From the sequence record NC_031927.1: 64,000 nucleotides of DNA. The stretch is one strand, 5' to 3'. Both the position numbers and the translations under genes were made by a program. The notes below the pieces were generated by a model, which did no database searches, was not told the origin of the DNA, and was given only the letters and a program-made list of their open reading frames with translations. Below are positions 1,651-54,119 of this stretch, piece after piece; the stretch's first letter is position 1; the number at the start of each line of letters is the position of its first letter.

Positions 1651-2055
1651 AATGCGTGCGTGTCAACAGTGATCGTTCGTGATAGGACAGTGCTATCCAT
1701 TCGTGCGTTGAGGACAGTGATATGGCGTTGCGATCCATCGATGGTGGGCGGCGTTACCCCGTATATAAAAAGTACCTTCTATCTAAGCTATAAAAGTAAA
1801 GATCGACCTATACTTATCGCTATTTAAAAAATTCTCCCAGATATTCTATGGACCCCAGAGTTGGCTCAGAGTTGCCTCAGAATACTCAGTGCCCCCCAGA
1901 GTTGTCTCTATATTATACCACACTTCTTAAATATTCCCCCATAAAAAAATCCCCCAGGTATTCAATACCCCTAGGAGATGATTATTATTATCTTGATAAC
2001 ATTCGCTTATCTCTGTGTAATCCCTCTACACAGAAGTATTGCGTATATCTTCAAT

Positions 2056-2120
2056 AAGTACTTAGAGTGTCTTATCAACCTCAACAAGGCTATTCTACAA
2101 GTATCTCCGTGTATTGTCAA
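2056..2120 (-). promoter_or_regulatory. Minus-strand sigma70 promoter plus conserved 36-bp downstream block, copy A
   Basis: Minus strand reads TTGACA (2120-2115), 17 nt, TAGAAT (2097-2092). 2056-2091 matches 49821-49856 at 34/36. Confidence 0.75.
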
Positions 2121-5030: not shown

Positions 5031-5192
5031 ATGACTCAACTTTATGATATAATCATTGAAGGACAGACAATTCACAAAGGTGTTTCGGAAGAAACCTTCT
5101 TTGATGTTATGTCTGACCTCTCAACAGCATATTATGAGAGGGGCTATCCAGATCCCTCAACAGTTTCCCACACAACTTACATTAAGGAGTAA
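5031..5192 (+). CDS. Hypothetical protein, 53 aa (MTQLYDIIIEGQTIHKGVSEETFFDVM...)
   Basis: My translation. AGGAGG RBS at 5020-5025 and TATAAT at 5002-5007 upstream. Confidence 0.8.
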   Translation: MTQLYDIIIEGQTIHKGVSEETFFDVMSDLSTAYYERGYPDPSTVSHTTYIKE

Positions 5193-28500: not shown

Positions 28501-29748
28501 ATTGATATTTCATCTAACCAAATTACAGTCGTTAGTCCAGAACTATTCTCAACCTTTGAAGGTATTTCCAGTAGTATTGGTTATCTATTGGTTGGTGGTG
28601 AGATTATGGAATATACGGACAATGGTGATGGCACATTGGGAATTACTTCTCGTGGTGTTGATTCAACATTGATTAATATTCATGATCAAGGCTCTAGGGT
28701 ATTCAAATATGAGTTGAGTGGTGTTTCTCTCAGGAGAATTAACACAGAGCACCAATTACCTACTGACCAGATTCTAGGAAATACTAGAGACTTTAATACT
28801 CTTCCATTGGAAATTGATCGTGGAGTTAGATCTATTGATGTTGGAATTACTCCATATACACCACAACTAAGTTTCAACCAAGAGCAACAATCTGGTGGAA
28901 ATTCTGTTAGATCATCACAAAACTTCCAGTATAATGCGATATTCCCTGCATTTGGGGTACTTACTCCTGGTGCAACTACCCAAATTGATACTTTGGTAAG
29001 AACTGTTACAGGAACTAGTGCTGGAGGTAATGAGGCATCATTTATTGATCAGGGTAGTGAGCCTATCGTATTAAATGCATTCAATGACTTTGATTCTCCT
29101 AGATTAGTTGCATCCATATACAATGAGAATGCATACTTACAAGATCTACCTAATAATAAGTCACTAACTATGGCTTTGACTTTTAGAAGCTCAGATCCAA
29201 ACTTAAGTCCCGCATTGGATATCAACCAAGCAACAGTCTTTAGTGCTAGATCTGCTCTTAATAATCCAGTAAGTAATTATGCTGATGATCCAAGAACAAA
29301 CCAGTTACTTGGAGATCCACATACCTCAATCTACATCTCCCAGAAGGTTGATTTGGATAATCCAGCAACATCTCTCAAAGTAATTCTTACTGCATATAGA
29401 GATGAGACGGCTGATTTCCGAGTTTGCTATAGGTTGTTTGGTGCTGATACACAAGGAAGCACAGAGCCAAGTTGGGTGTTATTCCCTGGGTACGACAACT
29501 TATTAGATACTACTGGTAATGGTATTGGTGATAAAATCATTGACGTATCCAAGTTCAGTGGTCTTCCCAATAAGAAAGTTCGTGCTAGTCGCTTAATTGG
29601 TCCATCAGGTTTTGAGGATCTTGAGTATCTTTATGAGATCGATTCTCTACCTGAGTTCTCAGCTTTCCAGTTGAAGATTGTATTCAGTGGAACCAATGAG
29701 GCTAGACCACCTTCACTCAACGACATCCGAGCAATCGCACTAGCTTAA
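22561..29748 (+). CDS. Large virion structural protein (VrlC-like / DUF4815-type), 2395 aa
   Basis: PYFDDFD..KDYYKVLFKPG.PVQARELT.LQSILQNQI, DNRRYTMRDIG.LEDRI and DPLAQTF motifs. Follows g8. Confidence 0.85.
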   Translation: MSQINLDTSPYFDDFDADKDYYKVLFKPGFPVQARELTTLQSILQNQISTFGEHFFKEGSMVIPGGITYNPQYTAVILEAQQGGIDVSLYLDQLVGKSIRGEVTGVRAKVIGYALPPQDAITNPTIFVTYTDSGNDDTTVFFTTNESLLLDQAIVYGNTTITANSIFATTVSTDATAVGSAAEIAEGVYFLRGTFVQVSKSSIVLEPYVNTPSYRVGLQITEQIVTAGQDNTLYDNAKGFNNFSAPGADRLKITLKLIKKPLNDYNDSNFVELLRVDFGEVKKLEENSNYNIIKEYIAGRTFDESGDYVINGFQLTADDSLNDNMGNGGIYNAEQTTEGGSKPSEDLAILKVSSGKAYVRGFDIKNPGTVNIDAPKARTTETQTSTGVPFEMGSKYFVNNVTSTPVVGLDIADNIIQLYSGRLDDSKEPTGDLIGEARVYSYSLEDAPYTSPATPWNLYLYDFQIFTKINLNRDVTSLLLAGYRVRGLSSGATGFVRTVSSDSATLTEVSGEFIIGERISINGSSIESISIASLTINKQNQVKSVKQNTSSLDPNIAVDFSADTRLYARVARNFAPSDTFSIDTSGFVTCAGRSFDSFKVGDIVVWQDSTNATLVYNEVLFLLPNDLGMNVGPVSNVAGVAAGTLPTSDLTGVNLRATESRVLNTENSALYVEMEKENIAKVNLDSSQLYFTTQITQQATVGSTLTLNRTLTGVNDALFTSFDQERYSIVYNDGTTETIGSEQVSLSADSTVITFTGLSKINEIGITVNVTAIKPSIKSKTKVLLKSQLLLVDKISPNLPADFGLTSNEFYGLRVDDEEISLNVADVESISAVYESLDGGDPVLDVLGFVNGLSLDANTVKGELILGSVSGTVAKMVDTTSPSNVRIVYFGQSRFEVGEEVIFSESNIKTNLQVVQPGNYNDITSKYTLDKGQREQFYDFSRLIRNGNAAAPNKKLLIVFDQFGVPADDNGDFYTANSYVEEIFATGVPMLRGGRLRASDTLDFRPRVAPFTATDASPFDYTSRDFATSGSTVVLVTAPDESMVLGYDYFVGRKDRVVLNTLGELKLVMGAPAFLPQLPESAEAALEIARVTYPPYVYDVDDITIITLDNRRYTMRDIGELEDRIETLEEVTSLSLLERETQSLQVLDADGNDRFKSGFFADDFRNTDFIDFDNPEARVVVGPTGTLEVGTQFASIPMQLQPESGIDINTLSLDQDFPLIDSNVRKTGDLVTLNYNQIEWLNQPLASRVENVNPFNVILYDGGMTLNPASDDFIVTRSIGNRQVNVFGESDEDFSRTFVEGIEVAQFMRERNVAFNAREIKPLTRFYPFFEGSGGIDFVPKLIEITMQNGTFQVGEAVIISVNNQTIFSARVAVQNHKTGPFNSPTTRFTTNPYNRDELISDGYSSSSTVLNVDIQSLSNLSDERYFGLIGPGLRLVGDQSGAIAVITDQRLVSDVSGDLFGSIYFRDPYTDPAPNFRLRTGIRTFRLSSSPTNELPQLGETIISFAEASFTSGGTIQNRRTESVNIRELPPPPPPIIIDRTVTNNFTTVIDRTVTVRPQTNITQITNITQRIRRRRRDPLAQTFFVDGTGAFLTGLDIYMKTKSEVDNLTIQIRRTELEIPLSSPIQDFAEVILTPNEVIVSDDATLPTPITFPSPIYLEPNVTYAVVLLAPTTDDYTAWIARMGENNITTPEGAASGAAVISQQYLGGSLFKSQNGSLWTPSQFEDLKFTLYKAQFVDTGTVFLNNPSIFETTDLDRNPIQTLPRKLTVFVEPTTYAFETGEKLASTASGVNNIARVVGEVEFVGAGVTLSSVTEGGIGYLDGSYSSVELTPINTNGINVLADVTITGGQVGIVSITSSGSGYRVGDTLGITTSLVGGSGGDAVVTVDSVGDTDTVFLTNVIGEKINITDSLNSYDEVGNVLTAIGTTISAESEVTDPMNTGSVFVLDLAAHGMMADNNIVRINGCLPDTLGTDLVEGIDISSNQITVVSPELFSTFEGISSSIGYLLVGGEIMEYTDNGDGTLGITSRGVDSTLINIHDQGSRVFKYELSGVSLRRINTEHQLPTDQILGNTRDFNTLPLEIDRGVRSIDVGITPYTPQLSFNQEQQSGGNSVRSSQNFQYNAIFPAFGVLTPGATTQIDTLVRTVTGTSAGGNEASFIDQGSEPIVLNAFNDFDSPRLVASIYNENAYLQDLPNNKSLTMALTFRSSDPNLSPALDINQATVFSARSALNNPVSNYADDPRTNQLLGDPHTSIYISQKVDLDNPATSLKVILTAYRDETADFRVCYRLFGADTQGSTEPSWVLFPGYDNLLDTTGNGIGDKIIDVSKFSGLPNKKVRASRLIGPSGFEDLEYLYEIDSLPEFSAFQLKIVFSGTNEARPPSLNDIRAIALA

Positions 29749-47910: not shown

Positions 47911-49371
47911 ATGTCCGACTTGATTATCAGCAAGAAGAACGAGGTGTTTCTTCAAATTGATTGTGAGCCACATATTCAATATGAGTTGCGTGATGCATTC
48001 TCATTTGAGGTTCCTGGTGCTAAGTTCCATCCATCATTCCGTAAGAGGCATTGGGATGGGACAATTAATTTATTTTCCCCACAAACCAAACAGATCTATG
48101 TTGGGTTGCTAGATCGTGTTATTGCGTTTTGTGAACAGTATGGTTATACATATGAATTCAGGGACAATAAGTTTTATGGATTACCTTATGAAGAAAATGA
48201 AGAGATCTCTCCTATTGGTGTTACTGATTGGGTTAAATCCATTACTTCTTATAAGCCCAGAGATTATCAGCTCCACGGGATCTATACCGCTCTCAAATCA
48301 AATAGGAAACTTATCGTTTCTCCAACTGCGTCTGGTAAGTCGCTAATGATCTATGCCCTAGTGGCATACTATGCTCAACGCAATGAGAATATTCTTATTG
48401 TAGTTCCTACTACATCTTTGGTAGAACAGATGTATAAGGACTTTGAGGATTATGGATTTGATGTTGGTTCTTATTGCCATAAGATCTATGGTGGCAAAGA
48501 ACTTAAAACTGATAAGCAAGTCACTATTACCACTTGGCAGTCTGTATACAAATTACCTAAACCATTCTTCCAAAAGTTTAATGTAGTCATTGGTGATGAG
48601 GCACATAACTTTAAGTCAAAGAGTTTAGTTAGTATTATGACTAAGCTATGTGACGCAAAGTATCGCTTTGGTTTCACAGGTACTCTTGATGGAACACAGA
48701 CAAATAAGCTTGTATTAGAAGGGCTATTCGGTCCAGCATATAACACCATTAGAACAAAGGAGCTAATGGAAGCTGGTCACGTAGCTAAACTTGATATAAA
48801 AGTTCTCTTATTAAAGCATGATGAGCAAACATTTAATAGGTATGAGGATGAGATTCAGTATCTTATCGGACACGAAAGAAGAAACAAATTTATTAGCAAT
48901 CTAGCATTAGGTTTGGAAGGTAATACTTTGGTTCTATTCACAAGAGTAGAAAATCACGGTAAACTCCTTCACGATCTTATAAATAATAAGAAAGATGAGA
49001 AACACCAAGTATTCTTCGTACATGGTGGTGTTGATGTAGAAGAACGAGAACAAGTACGAGAGATCACAGAAAGAGAAAACAATGCGATTATCATCGCATC
49101 CTACGGTGTATTCAGTACTGGTATCAATATTAAAAATCTACACAATGTAATTTTTGCTTCTCCATCTAAATCTCGTATACGTAATTTACAAAGTATAGGA
49201 CGTGTTCTTAGAAAAGGTGCTAATAAAGATAAGGCTATGTTATATGATATAGCTGATGATACGACAAAGAATGGTAAAAAGAACTACACTCTTAATCACT
49301 TAATTGAACGTATTAAAACATATAACGAAGAAAAATTTAATTATGACATAATCAATGTTAATTTACGGTAA
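47911..49371 (+). CDS. uvsW: SF2 RNA-DNA/DNA helicase UvsW
   Basis: SPTASGKS, IGDEAH, GFTGT and LQSIGR.LR motifs. Confidence 0.97.
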   Translation: MSDLIISKKNEVFLQIDCEPHIQYELRDAFSFEVPGAKFHPSFRKRHWDGTINLFSPQTKQIYVGLLDRVIAFCEQYGYTYEFRDNKFYGLPYEENEEISPIGVTDWVKSITSYKPRDYQLHGIYTALKSNRKLIVSPTASGKSLMIYALVAYYAQRNENILIVVPTTSLVEQMYKDFEDYGFDVGSYCHKIYGGKELKTDKQVTITTWQSVYKLPKPFFQKFNVVIGDEAHNFKSKSLVSIMTKLCDAKYRFGFTGTLDGTQTNKLVLEGLFGPAYNTIRTKELMEAGHVAKLDIKVLLLKHDEQTFNRYEDEIQYLIGHERRNKFISNLALGLEGNTLVLFTRVENHGKLLHDLINNKKDEKHQVFFVHGGVDVEEREQVREITERENNAIIIASYGVFSTGINIKNLHNVIFASPSKSRIRNLQSIGRVLRKGANKDKAMLYDIADDTTKNGKKNYTLNHLIERIKTYNEEKFNYDIINVNLR

Positions 49372-49376
49372 GTATT

Positions 49377-49802
49377 ATGACTGATAAGAAGATAGCATCT
49401 ATTAAACTAGTATCGGGTGAAGAAGTTGTATGTACATTACTGAGTATTGAAAAGGATGGTTCTTATACAATCTTATCTTTTACCAATCCATTAAGAATAC
49501 AATTACGGGATAGAAGGAGGAACAAAAGGTATTCATTAGAGCCTTGGTTGTGTCTTAAAAATGATACGATTCATTGTATTGATGTTACTAAAATTATTAC
49601 AGTAAATGAAATTACTGATGAGGATGTTCTTAGTGACTATAACTCATACTACAGGAAAAAGATTAACTTAATGCCTAAACCTAAAAGGGAGATATCAACT
49701 TCTAATAAAATAGGTTATGTAGGTAATACAAAAGACTTTAAAGATGTTCTAGAAAAACTCTATAGAGATACTGATTCATATGAGAAGCCAACTGACGTAT
49801 AA
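49377..49802 (+). CDS. Hypothetical protein downstream of uvsW (Sm-like-type N-terminus)
   Basis: IKLVSGEEVV motif at the position usually found between uvsW and g55. Confidence 0.75.
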   Translation: MTDKKIASIKLVSGEEVVCTLLSIEKDGSYTILSFTNPLRIQLRDRRRNKRYSLEPWLCLKNDTIHCIDVTKIITVNEITDEDVLSDYNSYYRKKINLMPKPKREISTSNKIGYVGNTKDFKDVLEKLYRDTDSYEKPTDV

Positions 49803-49820
49803 GTATCTCTATGTTTCTCT

Positions 49821-49886
49821 AAGTACTTAAAGTGTCTTATCAACCTCGACAAGGCTGATTGTACTCCATTTTGAGACCCTTGTCAA
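49821..49886 (-). promoter_or_regulatory. Minus-strand sigma70 promoter plus conserved 36-bp block, copy B
   Basis: Minus strand reads TTGACA (49886-49881), 17 nt, TACAAT (49863-49858). Block is 34/36 identical to 2056-2091. Confidence 0.75.
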
Positions 49887-49910
49887 GTCTTTACCATTTA
49901 TTGTGAATCT

Positions 49911-49920
49911 GTGCTATAAT
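49911..49920 (+). promoter_or_regulatory. Extended -10 promoter for g55
   Basis: TG-C-TATAAT, 27 nt upstream of the g55 ATG. Confidence 0.7.
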
Positions 49921-49946: not shown

Positions 49947-50423
49947 ATGGCTAAAGCTAAAACTGAACATTACGTTAACAATAGAGATTTTCTTGATGCT
50001 CTTATCGAGTACCGAGAGAAGGTAGCTGAAGCTGCTGCTAATGATCGCCCTAAGCCTAGGATTACTAACTATATTGGGTCTTGCTTCCTTAAGATTGCTA
50101 CCCACCTTAGCTATAAGTCTAACTTCGTAAACTATATGTACCGTGAGGATATGATCTCCGATGGTATTGAGAACTGCGTACAATACATCCATAACTTTGA
50201 CCCAGCTAAGTCAAAGAACCCATTCGCATACTTCACCCAGATTAGCTACTTCGCATTCCTACGCCGTATTCAGCGAGAGAAGAGACAGCTTGATATTAAA
50301 ACTAAGATTGTAGAGAAGAGTGGATTTGAAGCACTAATGACTTCTGATGCTAATCTAACCAACGAATACCGTAACGATTACAACGCAATCAAAGAAAACA
50401 TCATTACCAAGCTTAACTCATGA
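49947..50423 (+). CDS. g55: Late-transcription sigma factor gp55
   Basis: HYVNN..F, F..Y.YREDMISDG.ENC.QY..NFDP.KS.NPFAYFTQI...AFLRRI..EK.Q motifs. Confidence 0.97.
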   Translation: MAKAKTEHYVNNRDFLDALIEYREKVAEAAANDRPKPRITNYIGSCFLKIATHLSYKSNFVNYMYREDMISDGIENCVQYIHNFDPAKSKNPFAYFTQISYFAFLRRIQREKRQLDIKTKIVEKSGFEALMTSDANLTNEYRNDYNAIKENIITKLNS

Positions 50424-53489: not shown

Positions 53490-54119
53490 ATGAGTAAATT
53501 TAAGAACAACCTTATAGATGCTAATTTATTTCCTAGTTTTCTTTTATCTACTGATCTAAGATCTCTTGTTAGTAATAATGATATAAACTCAGAGTTTACT
53601 ATTATTAGAAATATTGATAGTGGGTTGAATAAAACAAACGTTGGTGGGTGGCACTCCACTCTTTATAAGAAGAATAGTGATTTGTGTGATTACACTAACA
53701 TAAAAAAACTATATGAACTTGTTTCTGAGTTTGTTGATGAATTTTTAGAAAATGATAAAACTAATTTATATACATCGAGTGTTAACTCATGGTTGTTGGA
53801 AAATGATTGTGGGTCATATAATACACTACATAATCATGGTAAAACTGATCTAATTGGGGTATATTATGTTAATATTCCTGAGGACTGTGGTGGATTAACT
53901 CTAATAAGAACCGACGCATTTACTCATACTGCGCTATGTGGTTCAAATAATTCTACACAATTTGCAAATTCCTTTACCCCAGATATTGATATCGGTAGAT
54001 TGTATGTTATGCCTGGTCATCTTTATCATCATGTAAGACCATTTGATAGTGAAGGATTGAGGAGATCTATTGTATTCAATATTAATTGTCAAGATATAAG
54101 TTATAGACAATCTGAATAG
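53490..54119 (+). CDS. 2OG-Fe(II) oxygenase superfamily protein (TIGR02466-like)
   Basis: W...N..G.YN..H.HG...L.GVYYV..P, L.H.V.P and R.SI.FN motifs. Confidence 0.8.
   Translation: MSKFKNNLIDANLFPSFLLSTDLRSLVSNNDINSEFTIIRNIDSGLNKTNVGGWHSTLYKKNSDLCDYTNIKKLYELVSEFVDEFLENDKTNLYTSSVNSWLLENDCGSYNTLHNHGKTDLIGVYYVNIPEDCGGLTLIRTDAFTHTALCGSNNSTQFANSFTPDIDIGRLYVMPGHLYHHVRPFDSEGLRRSIVFNINCQDISYRQSE

Follow-up and report, generated by a model that had tools for sequence, protein, structure and literature searches.

The stretch analysed here (the window, 64,000 nucleotides, positions 62,001-126,000 of record NC_031927.1) comes from Synechococcus phage S-CAM7 (Kyanoviridae, Mazuvirus), and our subject is a minus-strand promoter, followed by a conserved element of 36 nucleotides (the 36-mer), that lies between gp152 and g55, the gene for the late-transcription sigma factor. 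Judged by sequence, this promoter, which we call copy B, is a real, non-random and selected minus-strand promoter that stands back-to-back with the g55 promoter. We think the chances somewhat better than even that copy B represents a dispersed cassette of early promoter plus leader RNA, similar to the PeSL cassettes of other T4-type phages, and that at g55 this cassette forms the outward arm of a bidirectional promoter, producing a non-coding antisense RNA and probably acting in competition with the promoter of g55. The comparisons described below establish the architecture of the element, its copy number, its positional conservation, the lack of a conserved open reading frame (ORF) and the presence of predicted terminators on two further copies, A and C.

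The copy B promoter reads TTGACA-N17-TACAAT on the minus strand, as the first-pass annotation of this DNA had described it, and the extended -10 of g55 does lie, as was also said there, 25 bp from the antisense -35 and facing the opposite way (positions are collected in Table 1). The 36-mer begins one base past TACAAT and recurs in the window as copy A, the two 36-mers being identical at 34/36 positions, with both differences transitions and with unrelated promoter spacers; this match, which had likewise been noticed, was found in none of 100 dinucleotide shuffles. The copy B leader contains an inverted repeat (CAGCCT/AGGTTG) across the transcription start site (TSS), predicted at ~49850, a Shine-Dalgarno (SD)-like GAGG, a 14-nt core UAAGACACUUUAAG and a hairpin CU[U/C]UAA-GUAC-UUAGAG. 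It can be seen that copy B has the geometry of a cis-antisense RNA, as the predicted TSS sits 48 nt from the gp152 stop with no terminator between. The long hairpin predicted further along the transcript is antisense to the final codons of gp152, a gene that has no Pfam match, and is followed by only a weak U-run. A terminator-like hairpin with a T-run was also seen at 49100-49081 on the minus strand, within the 3' part of uvsW, and could stop an antisense copy B RNA of ~770 nt; in that region two terminator-like sites were found where 0.8 would be expected by chance. Over 24 nt the tail of the element (49816-49839) resembles, at 92% identity, the region annotated as 'primary origin of replication' in T3 and relatives; this T3/T7 match (E = 4) was rejected as most likely due to chance.

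To assess the conservation of the antisense promoter across cyanomyoviruses, IMG/VR was scanned with a generic pattern (promoter + TGT-N1-3-AGGKT), which returned at least 120 loci. About 75 among the 120 matches listed fall exactly between a gp152-like gene and g55, and at these the promoter is on the strand opposite to uvsW-gp152-g55-g47. An unbiased set was also drawn up, comprising 80 viral-metagenome loci fetched by similarity to the g55 protein alone (69-100% identity), 78 of which have enough upstream DNA. A perfect antisense TTGACA-N16-18-TAnAAT is present ~40-120 nt from the g55 ATG in 72/78 of these unselected loci, and all 78 have the promoter if one mismatch per hexamer is allowed. 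It is found at g55 in the cultured phages Bellamy, ACG-2014f and Syn9 as well. In several loci (e.g. L025, L026, L046, L050, L054) gp152 has been replaced by non-homologous DNA, and therefore the conserved partner of the promoter is g55 and not the upstream gene. On this comparative evidence copy B occupies an ancestral, nearly universal site.

The DNA behind the promoter is also conserved. Seven IMG/VR contigs carry the S-CAM7-type element, which in these relatives occupies sites B, C and A. Leader plus element keep 85-91% identity in relatives where that of the flanking coding DNA is down to 60-70%, a difference that demonstrates, at the level of nucleotide identity, local purifying selection on the leader. 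Both the conserved initially transcribed sequence suggested by the first-pass annotation and the conservation in relatives that it proposed to check for are thus borne out. A recurrent C/T polymorphism in CT[C/T]TAAGTACTTAGAG always lies opposite G in the hairpin, so that either variant pairs in RNA. A small protein was rejected as the conserved product, since no ORF is conserved downstream of the antisense promoter and 43/67 sequences lack an ATG in the first 80 nt; moreover, the substitutions among the four S-CAM7 copies are non-synonymous in the sole open frame (judged by eye). We also rejected a conserved terminator for the g55-antisense RNA: a hairpin with T-run occurs within 250 nt in 30/67 loci, at inconsistent positions and mostly with weak, G-U-rich stems. 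As regards host mimicry, a search of 185,579 bacterial and archaeal species, each represented by one genome, gave no match to the S-CAM7-type element. A full-text literature search, with Doron et al. 2016 and Mann et al. 2005 outside its coverage, returned no description of an antisense or bidirectional promoter at cyanophage g55.

The canonical layout of these loci on the coding strand is ATTnTA-N17-TGTCAA-N15/16-TG[CT]TATAAT-N27-33-ATG(g55). The g55 extended -10 (TGnTAYAMT) is present in 63/63 unique strict loci, the palindrome CTTGTCAAG surrounds the antisense -35 in 50 of the 63, and the extended -10 lies 15-16 bp from TGTCAA in 47, a spacing at which the -35 position of g55 (TTGTCA) overlaps the antisense TTGACA. 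In Syn9 the two are fully interdigitated divergent consensus promoters (TTGACAAGTTTGTCAA, record 123,698-123,769; L213 23698-23769). S-CAM7 itself departs from the family norm, as a 13-bp insertion at copy B places the g55 TATAAT 28 bp from the antisense -35 (TGTCAA end) instead of 15-16 bp; copy C, described below, retains the canonical spacing (14 bp).

The two arms of this arrangement are of different types. In T4, extended -10 promoters need no contact of sigma region 4 with a -35. TGnTATAAT occurs 33 times on the coding strand of the S-CAM7 genome compared with 6 times on the other, many of these sites precede replication and metabolism genes, and it is probably the main early/middle promoter type of the phage; TTGACA-type promoters are rare (8 perfect). 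The TGnTATAAT sites, which in the window include those at 5045, 49912, 51606, 56352, 58563, 59038 and 60875, often come directly after a hairpin and T-run, making composite terminator-promoter modules. The g55 region is like symmetric bidirectional bacterial promoters in that one symmetric element serves RNA polymerase both ways. In those promoters, whose bidirectionality reportedly arises from sequence symmetry, the shared element is said to be the -10 and the TSSs to be ~18 bp apart, whereas here it is the -35 palindrome (CTTGaCAAG) that is shared and the predicted TSSs are ~70 bp apart; a further difference is that the g55 region combines a -35-dependent arm with an arm of the extended -10 type.

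Three parts of the promoter and leader vary little or not at all across the unbiased g55 set, namely the -10, a TGT where transcription is predicted to start, and a purine-rich AGGGTT/GAGGTT. Between the -10 and TGT lie 5-6 nt that complement the AGGGTT segment and occur in co-varying versions (CTC/GAG, CCT/AGG, CCC/GGG, CAAC/GTTG). Pairing of the native arms averages 5.29 bp compared with 4.85 +/- 0.07 bp after arms are swapped, and 0/2000 permutations reach the native value; the pairing is also better in the minus sense (5.29 bp) than in the plus sense (4.25 bp). The repeat spans -6 to +12, with its 5' arm upstream of the expected start.

To place copies A and B in context, the whole S-CAM7 genome (216 kb) was assembled from the public record and scanned with the 36-mer, allowing up to 12 mismatches. 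Four copies were found, A and B inside the window in antisense orientation and C and D outside it in sense orientation, and the scan found no weaker copies in the S-CAM7 genome. The consensus over the four copies, 5' to 3', is AGCCTTGT[CT]GAGG[TG]TGATAAG[AC/TG]ACT[CT]TAAGTACT[TA], and all four 36-mers start 0-1 nt past cTTGACA-N17-TA[CG]AAT. The earlier count of two copies, both on the minus strand, was therefore an effect of the window edge, because C and D, oppositely oriented, lie beyond it; and with two of four copies firing in the sense direction, the block cannot be called an 'antisense' device, nor is it tied to uvsW in particular. The 216-kb genome has eight perfect TTGACA-N16-18-TAnAAT sites, four of them at copies A-D, where composition-based arithmetic (this is not a tool result) expects ~0.9. 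Only two of the eight are on the minus strand, and these are A and B, which agrees with the first-pass view that no other minus-strand signal is convincing.

Copies B and C have in addition an upstream block ATTATAGCACAGATT in common, which is the complement of the 'g55' extended -10, and their shared inverted module of ~110 bp includes both divergent promoters. We conclude from this shared block that both divergent promoters were duplicated together, as one unit that has the reverse orientation at site C. The copies differ in the structures around their promoters. Copy C has a 16-bp perfect palindrome CTCTAAGTACTTAGAG; copy D has a stem-loop with a T-run between -35 and -10 (AGACCTC..TTGACA..GGGGGTCTTTTTTT); the stems around the -35 of B and C are only 4-5 bp with no T-run; and copy A has no such stem-loop.

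We folded the transcripts of the four copies from an assumed start ~7-8 nt after the -10 and compared their stabilities with those of shuffled sequences. The copy C transcript is predicted to be ~68 nt long and to end in GGGACCUCUUUAGGUCCC plus U6 (z = -4.9), and that of copy A to be a non-coding RNA of ~140 nt with a 10-bp hairpin and U7 at its end (z = -3.7). Both have what is expected of a small-RNA gene, namely their own promoter, an intrinsic terminator, no ORF and a conserved unpaired segment, as far as sequence and folding can tell. Copies B and D have no terminator and so do not qualify as terminated small RNAs; copy D would give an unstructured 56-nt leader ahead of a small ORF with no SD beside its ATG. 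Searches of Rfam gave no hits for the window at the gathering threshold and none in E-value scans of A, B and the helicase-upstream family loci described below; a scan of C gave only sub-threshold, chance-level hits (Atu_C8 27.9 bits and SraG 22.2 bits, each with a gathering score of 50).

Table 1. Positions of the features discussed (window positions unless a record or locus is named).
Feature	Position	Strand or orientation	Remarks
Copy B promoter	49858..49886	minus	-35 TTGACA 49886-49881, 17-nt spacer, -10 TACAAT 49863-49858
Conserved transcribed leader, copy B	49812..49857	minus	36-mer (49821-49856) plus CTTAGAGAA extension
Long hairpin of copy B transcript, predicted	49757..49811	minus	z = -3.5 vs shuffles
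g55 promoter	49912..49920	plus	extended -10 TGcTATAAT
g55	49947..50423	plus	late-transcription sigma factor gene
gp152	49377..49802	plus	upstream gene, annotated 'methylamine utilization'; 3' end overlapped antisense by predicted copy B transcript
uvsW	47911..49371	plus	helicase gene; would be reached by copy B transcript only if unterminated for >480 nt
Copy A promoter	2092..2120	minus	TTGACA 2120-2115, 17-nt spacer, TAGAAT 2097-2092
Copy A leader element (36 nt)	2056..2091	minus	
Copy A terminator hairpin plus U7	1943..1979	minus	stem unchanged in two other isolates
Extended -10 TGGTATAAT	1912..1920	minus	just past copy A terminator and a TTTAAGAAGTG word
Copy C	record 209,615-209,650	opposite to A and B	1 mismatch
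Copy D	record 155,142-155,177	opposite to A and B	4 mismatches
Helicase-upstream RNA	L217 2577-2745		also L227, L231, L241, L246, L252, L257, L259, L267, L268
Helicase-upstream RNA, further loci	L281, L284-L289, L096, L109, L333-L412		

Other phage contigs also have the 14-nt core of the 36-mer (TAAGACACTTTAAG), where it is again preceded by this promoter and by a leader of similar sequence. The architecture of this wider family is cTTGACA-N17-TAGA[CA]T-ACCTTTGTnnGGGTTGAAGA-(10-20 nt)-TAAGACACTTTAAGAAC[CT]GTCCAC-hairpin-TTTTCT, found in at least ~30 among the 119 exact-match loci listed from IMG/VR, and it is followed directly by a TGCTATAAT promoter and a helicase gene. The helicase is 52% identical to S-CAM7 gp024, from which we take the contigs to be cyanomyoviruses. 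Many cyanomyoviruses have an unannotated small-RNA-like gene of ~70-81 nt between a tail gene and the helicase gene, and the layout of region A (promoter, RNA, terminator, promoter) is the same as that of this locus. Promoter, leader, related core words and terminator were all present in 49/73 unselected helicase loci, with core variants ..ACAGTTTAAG.. and ..CCACTTTGAG.. and with terminator stems that differ among subfamilies. The RNA is unannotated yet present in the cultured phages S-SKS1, S-SRM01, S-IOM18, S-RIM2, S-RIM50 and S-BM1, and it has no Rfam family. A common fold from RNAalifold was tried for the small-RNA family and rejected, as it consisted of one 4-bp helix with no compensatory change and the terminators of the subfamilies do not align. 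S-RIM4 and S-H35 have a related sense copy with a ..GAGTACTTAGAGAG tail.

In S-CAM7 the helicase locus is split, its promoter (record 28,619) being separated by two ORFs from a 3' remnant of the small RNA (29,284-29,345). The gp024 helicase probably starts at a GTG at 29,366 (V-I-Q-L-R-P-H-Q), upstream of the annotated 29,432 (L003 29284-29432), and ahead of this GTG is the small-RNA core with a hairpin remnant that has no U-run. ACG-2014f, from the sister genus, has a single copy of its cassette. In Syn9 a second leader copy (AACACTG[CT]CAGGGTTGA) lies in sense orientation ahead of gp88 (L212 2741-2800); the two Syn9 leaders, at 123.7 and 52.7 kb, agree at 16/17 of their first nucleotides. 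Outside the window, at record 182,965-183,045 (L006 7965-8045), there is a lone module of AAACTGTCCAC, hairpin, T-run and TGTATAAT; it corresponds to the 3' part of the helicase-upstream RNA locus, which circulates as a terminator-promoter unit too.

The closest comparison for these cassettes is with the PeSLs, which are strong sigma70-like promoters with stem-loops and an SD at the 3' end, shuffled by recombination (PMC2839356, PMC4122927). They have been described in the T4-type phages RB49/phi1, nt-1/KVP40 and PST/T4 (Arbiol et al. 2010, PMC2839356; Comeau et al. 2014, PMC4122927) and are not reported as frequent in cyanophages (PMC4503421). The S-CAM7 elements are like PeSLs in being short repeated intergenic cassettes with a near-perfect promoter (TTGACA-N17-TATAAT in PeSLs; TTGACA-N17-TA[CG]AAT in 4/4 S-CAM7 copies), a stem-loop (clear in copy D alone) and an SD-like 3' sequence, and in being placed at module boundaries and apparently linked with rearrangements. 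In PeSLs the stem-loop can terminate transcription from upstream and commonly lies between -35 and -10, and the many copies are co-oriented with the genes and lead into the SD and start codon of an ORFan. The S-CAM7 elements differ in number and orientation, with four copies instead of dozens, A and B antisense, C terminated and only D before an ORF, which starts 56 nt downstream. They differ also in that the conserved part extends ~45 nt into the transcript and two copies have their own terminator, which makes them RNA genes rather than ORF promoters, and in that one copy is positionally fixed across the whole virus family. The inverted module shared by B and C, the split helicase locus and the single copy in ACG-2014f point to recombination between promoter cassettes, and this looks like PeSL-like cassette shuffling in the cyanomyovirus lineage.

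At g55 the cassette would work as follows. Copy B, a near-consensus promoter of the host-sigma70 'early' type firing away from g55, would give a non-coding RNA of which the first ~45 nt are the conserved leader and the remainder runs antisense into the 3' end of gp152. Early use of this promoter by unmodified host RNA polymerase would delay or limit g55 transcription because, with the antisense -35 hexamer overlapping the g55 -35 position in most relatives, a leftward-bound polymerase would exclude a rightward-bound one. As -35-dependent transcription falls, the -35-independent extended -10 promoter of g55 may then take over; we infer from the behaviour of extended -10 promoters in T4 that the competition would hold while the unmodified host holoenzyme dominates. 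The conserved leader may act as RNA, by pairing or by binding a protein. Across the genome, A and C would serve as free-standing small RNAs, D as an mRNA leader and B as the g55-antisense RNA. A stronger form of this scheme, which we hold only tentatively and think unlikely, is that the palindromic -35 before g55 is a family-wide switch timing late transcription. Early leftward binding by sigma70 would block g55 until -35 recognition is lost or outcompeted through a putative phage factor, when the extended -10 would fire and gp55 would appear; the shared leader and core RNA would then be a new riboregulator of the early-to-middle transition.

Several points weigh against the cassette model. 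TSS, RNA ends and timing are all predictions, and a terminator scan with folding of the copy B region gave no clear terminator for the copy B RNA. Because of the 13-bp insertion the two S-CAM7 g55 promoters no longer share a -35, so occlusion would be weaker than the family norm. Cyanomyoviruses have no recognisable AsiA or MotA (PMC2984593), and hence there is no known agent for the proposed loss of -35 recognition. The PeSL analogy is imperfect, with A and B pointing against genes and A having no stem-loop. The covariation statistic from the arm swaps ignores phylogenetic relatedness, and the inverted repeat would not be wholly within the RNA if transcription begins ~7 nt after the -10, so that it may act in RNA, in displaced DNA or otherwise.

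A potential explanation that makes the overlap with neighbouring genes the point of the element is that copy B is a cis-antisense regulator. Its early transcription would keep gp152 and uvsW silent, either through an RNA duplex or through colliding polymerases, until transcription that depends on sigma70 declines, tying uvsW to g55 activation much as the first-pass annotation had proposed. The antisense orientation and position are conserved across cyanomyoviruses, the stop of the upstream gene is usually only ~20-25 nt from the TSS in relatives with no terminator between, and T4 UvsW is made late, with a timing that matters (PMC3016281). Cyanophage S-PM2 has an antisense RNA of ~225 nt, CfrI (Millard et al. 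2010, cited through PMC2984593), which is likewise a non-coding RNA running against the general gene direction of a T4-like cyanophage and overlapping the end of a protein gene. CfrI belongs to another locus (psbA and a homing endonuclease), is not related in sequence, is not multi-copy and has no link with a consensus sigma70 promoter that also serves a neighbour gene. However, the conserved partner of copy B is g55 and not the target, the gp152 homologue being absent between uvsW and the promoter in several loci; uvsW begins >480 nt downstream; it is the leader, outside the overlap, that is conserved in the RNA and not the antisense part; and copies C and D bear the same leader in sense orientation. 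The coupling to g55 is still plausible by way of the shared -35 palindrome, but the upstream gene is replaced in some loci. Silencing of uvsW is a possibility without specific support, and we doubt the explanation as a whole. We are equally doubtful that the copies are sibling trans-acting small RNAs, in which A, C and the 5' ends of B and D would share a seed, the core UAAGACACUUUAAG with its flanks, that pairs with phage or host mRNAs. As the C and D RNAs are perfectly complementary over 36 nt to plus-strand read-through at A and B, they could mark such read-through (e.g. uvsW-gp152 towards g55) for cleavage. A and C each have a strong promoter of their own, an intrinsic terminator and no ORF, and the core is common to the terminated ~70-81-nt RNAs of other genera. 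Copies within a genome are more alike than orthologues between genomes (the four S-CAM7 copies; the Syn9 leaders), the C/U variation keeps the hairpin, and the element is better conserved than neighbouring genes. Against this, no target was identified, and beyond the 36-nt read-through complementarity no target search was made; RNAalifold on the family gave only 4 pairs without compensatory change; there is no match in Rfam or in the 185,579 bacterial and archaeal genomes; and a portion of the core (AACYGTCCAC + hairpin + TGnTATAAT) is found by itself, too, as a module of terminator and promoter, so that the core may be a DNA-level signal.

The first-pass annotation had also raised the possibility that the copies are a pair of R-loop replication origins, whose transcripts stay hybridised, prime the leading strand as at T4 oriF/oriG and are later removed by UvsW. 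T4 oriF(uvsY) and oriG(34) consist of a promoter and an A+T-rich unwinding element, where R-loops prime synthesis and UvsW removes them (Kreuzer & Brister 2010, PMC3016281). The S-CAM7 copies are similar, at the sequence level only, in having a pre-late-type promoter within a ~100-bp element with somewhat A+T-rich DNA downstream, and copy B lies in a recombination/replication gene neighbourhood, beside uvsW and uvsY; T4 oriE, which depends on an early promoter, has iterons, and region A has phased repeats. The DNA downstream of the four copies has an A+T fraction of 0.65-0.75, the mean for the genome being 0.59 (sd 0.08, 40-nt windows), family transcripts are rich in G over C in their first 30 nt (skew +0.5), copy A is in a ~1-kb non-coding stretch with phased TAGAG words beside the detrended GC-skew minimum (record 64,401), and an origin needs no fixed orientation, which suits the mixed orientation of the copies. 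This support is generic, however. The A+T excess is modest, reaching the 90-95th percentile only in places, and no clear unwinding element was found. GC skew was rejected as an origin marker, since the S-CAM7 minimum coincides with the early/late gene-block boundary and the Syn9 extremes (~101.7 and 44.5 kb) are far from its copies (123.7, 52.7 kb). The S-CAM7 promoter is not of the MotA middle type and its leader has no G-clusters, copy D runs straight into an ORF, and strong intrinsic terminators close the A and C transcripts, at 140 and 68 nt, as they close the helicase-upstream RNAs, so that discrete small RNAs fit better than primers. We consider origins improbable. The least probable explanation, in our estimation, is a DNA operator, with the TSS inverted repeat and the AGTACT palindrome binding a dimeric phage repressor that shuts off strong host-type promoters after the early phase. 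Repressor-operator co-evolution would account for elements that are identical inside one genome and diverge from one genome to the next, the inverted repeat lies at -6 to +12, a position that does not let an RNA hairpin form in full, and both S-CAM7 and Syn9 encode a small 'transcriptional regulator'. The perfect palindrome of copy C would also fit an operator, but the palindrome is absent from copies A, D and near relatives. Likewise the palindromic binding site TAAGTACTTA put forward in the first-pass annotation is not conserved in copy D or near relatives, and the C/U change there keeps pairing with G, as in an RNA hairpin. The stems vary freely and yet stay complementary, and T-G pairs work on one strand only, as is typical of nucleic-acid structure and not of a protein site. 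No convincing NtcA or LexA box was seen, by eye only.

The surroundings of copy A hold further features. The RefSeq ORFs gp119 and gp120 ('hypothetical proteins') drawn across this region are unannotated in two other isolates and are hit by indels of 19-29 bp, and for these reasons window ~1645-2690 can be read as ~1 kb of non-coding DNA. It contains direct repeats CAGAGTTG[GC]CTC (~1855-1905) whose copy number varies among isolates, several hairpins, and a late-type TATAAATA at 2447. TAGAG/CATAGAG words are phased ~11 bp apart (2250-2300, 2585-2625) and are also found just past the element in copies B and C, while another intergenic gap outside the window (record 53,860-53,990; L004 3860-3990) has a tandem array of CCATAGAG-containing units. 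These words could be iteron-like or protein-binding; they were not accepted as iterons, as they cluster at A, B, C and record 53.86-53.99 kb and are not otherwise enriched.

T4-like cyanophages are among the most abundant viruses of the ocean, and the way in which they put early, middle and late transcription in order, lacking MotA and AsiA, has still to be explained (PMC2984593). For annotation, our analysis speaks against counting as genes the two 'hypothetical proteins' placed in a 1-kb gap of S-CAM7, and it adds an unannotated family of promoter-plus-terminator small RNAs, absent from Rfam, in cultured and uncultured cyanomyoviruses. The near-invariant promoter of consensus strength that faces away from g55 and shares its -35 with the g55 promoter offers a concrete, testable candidate for part of the timing mechanism.

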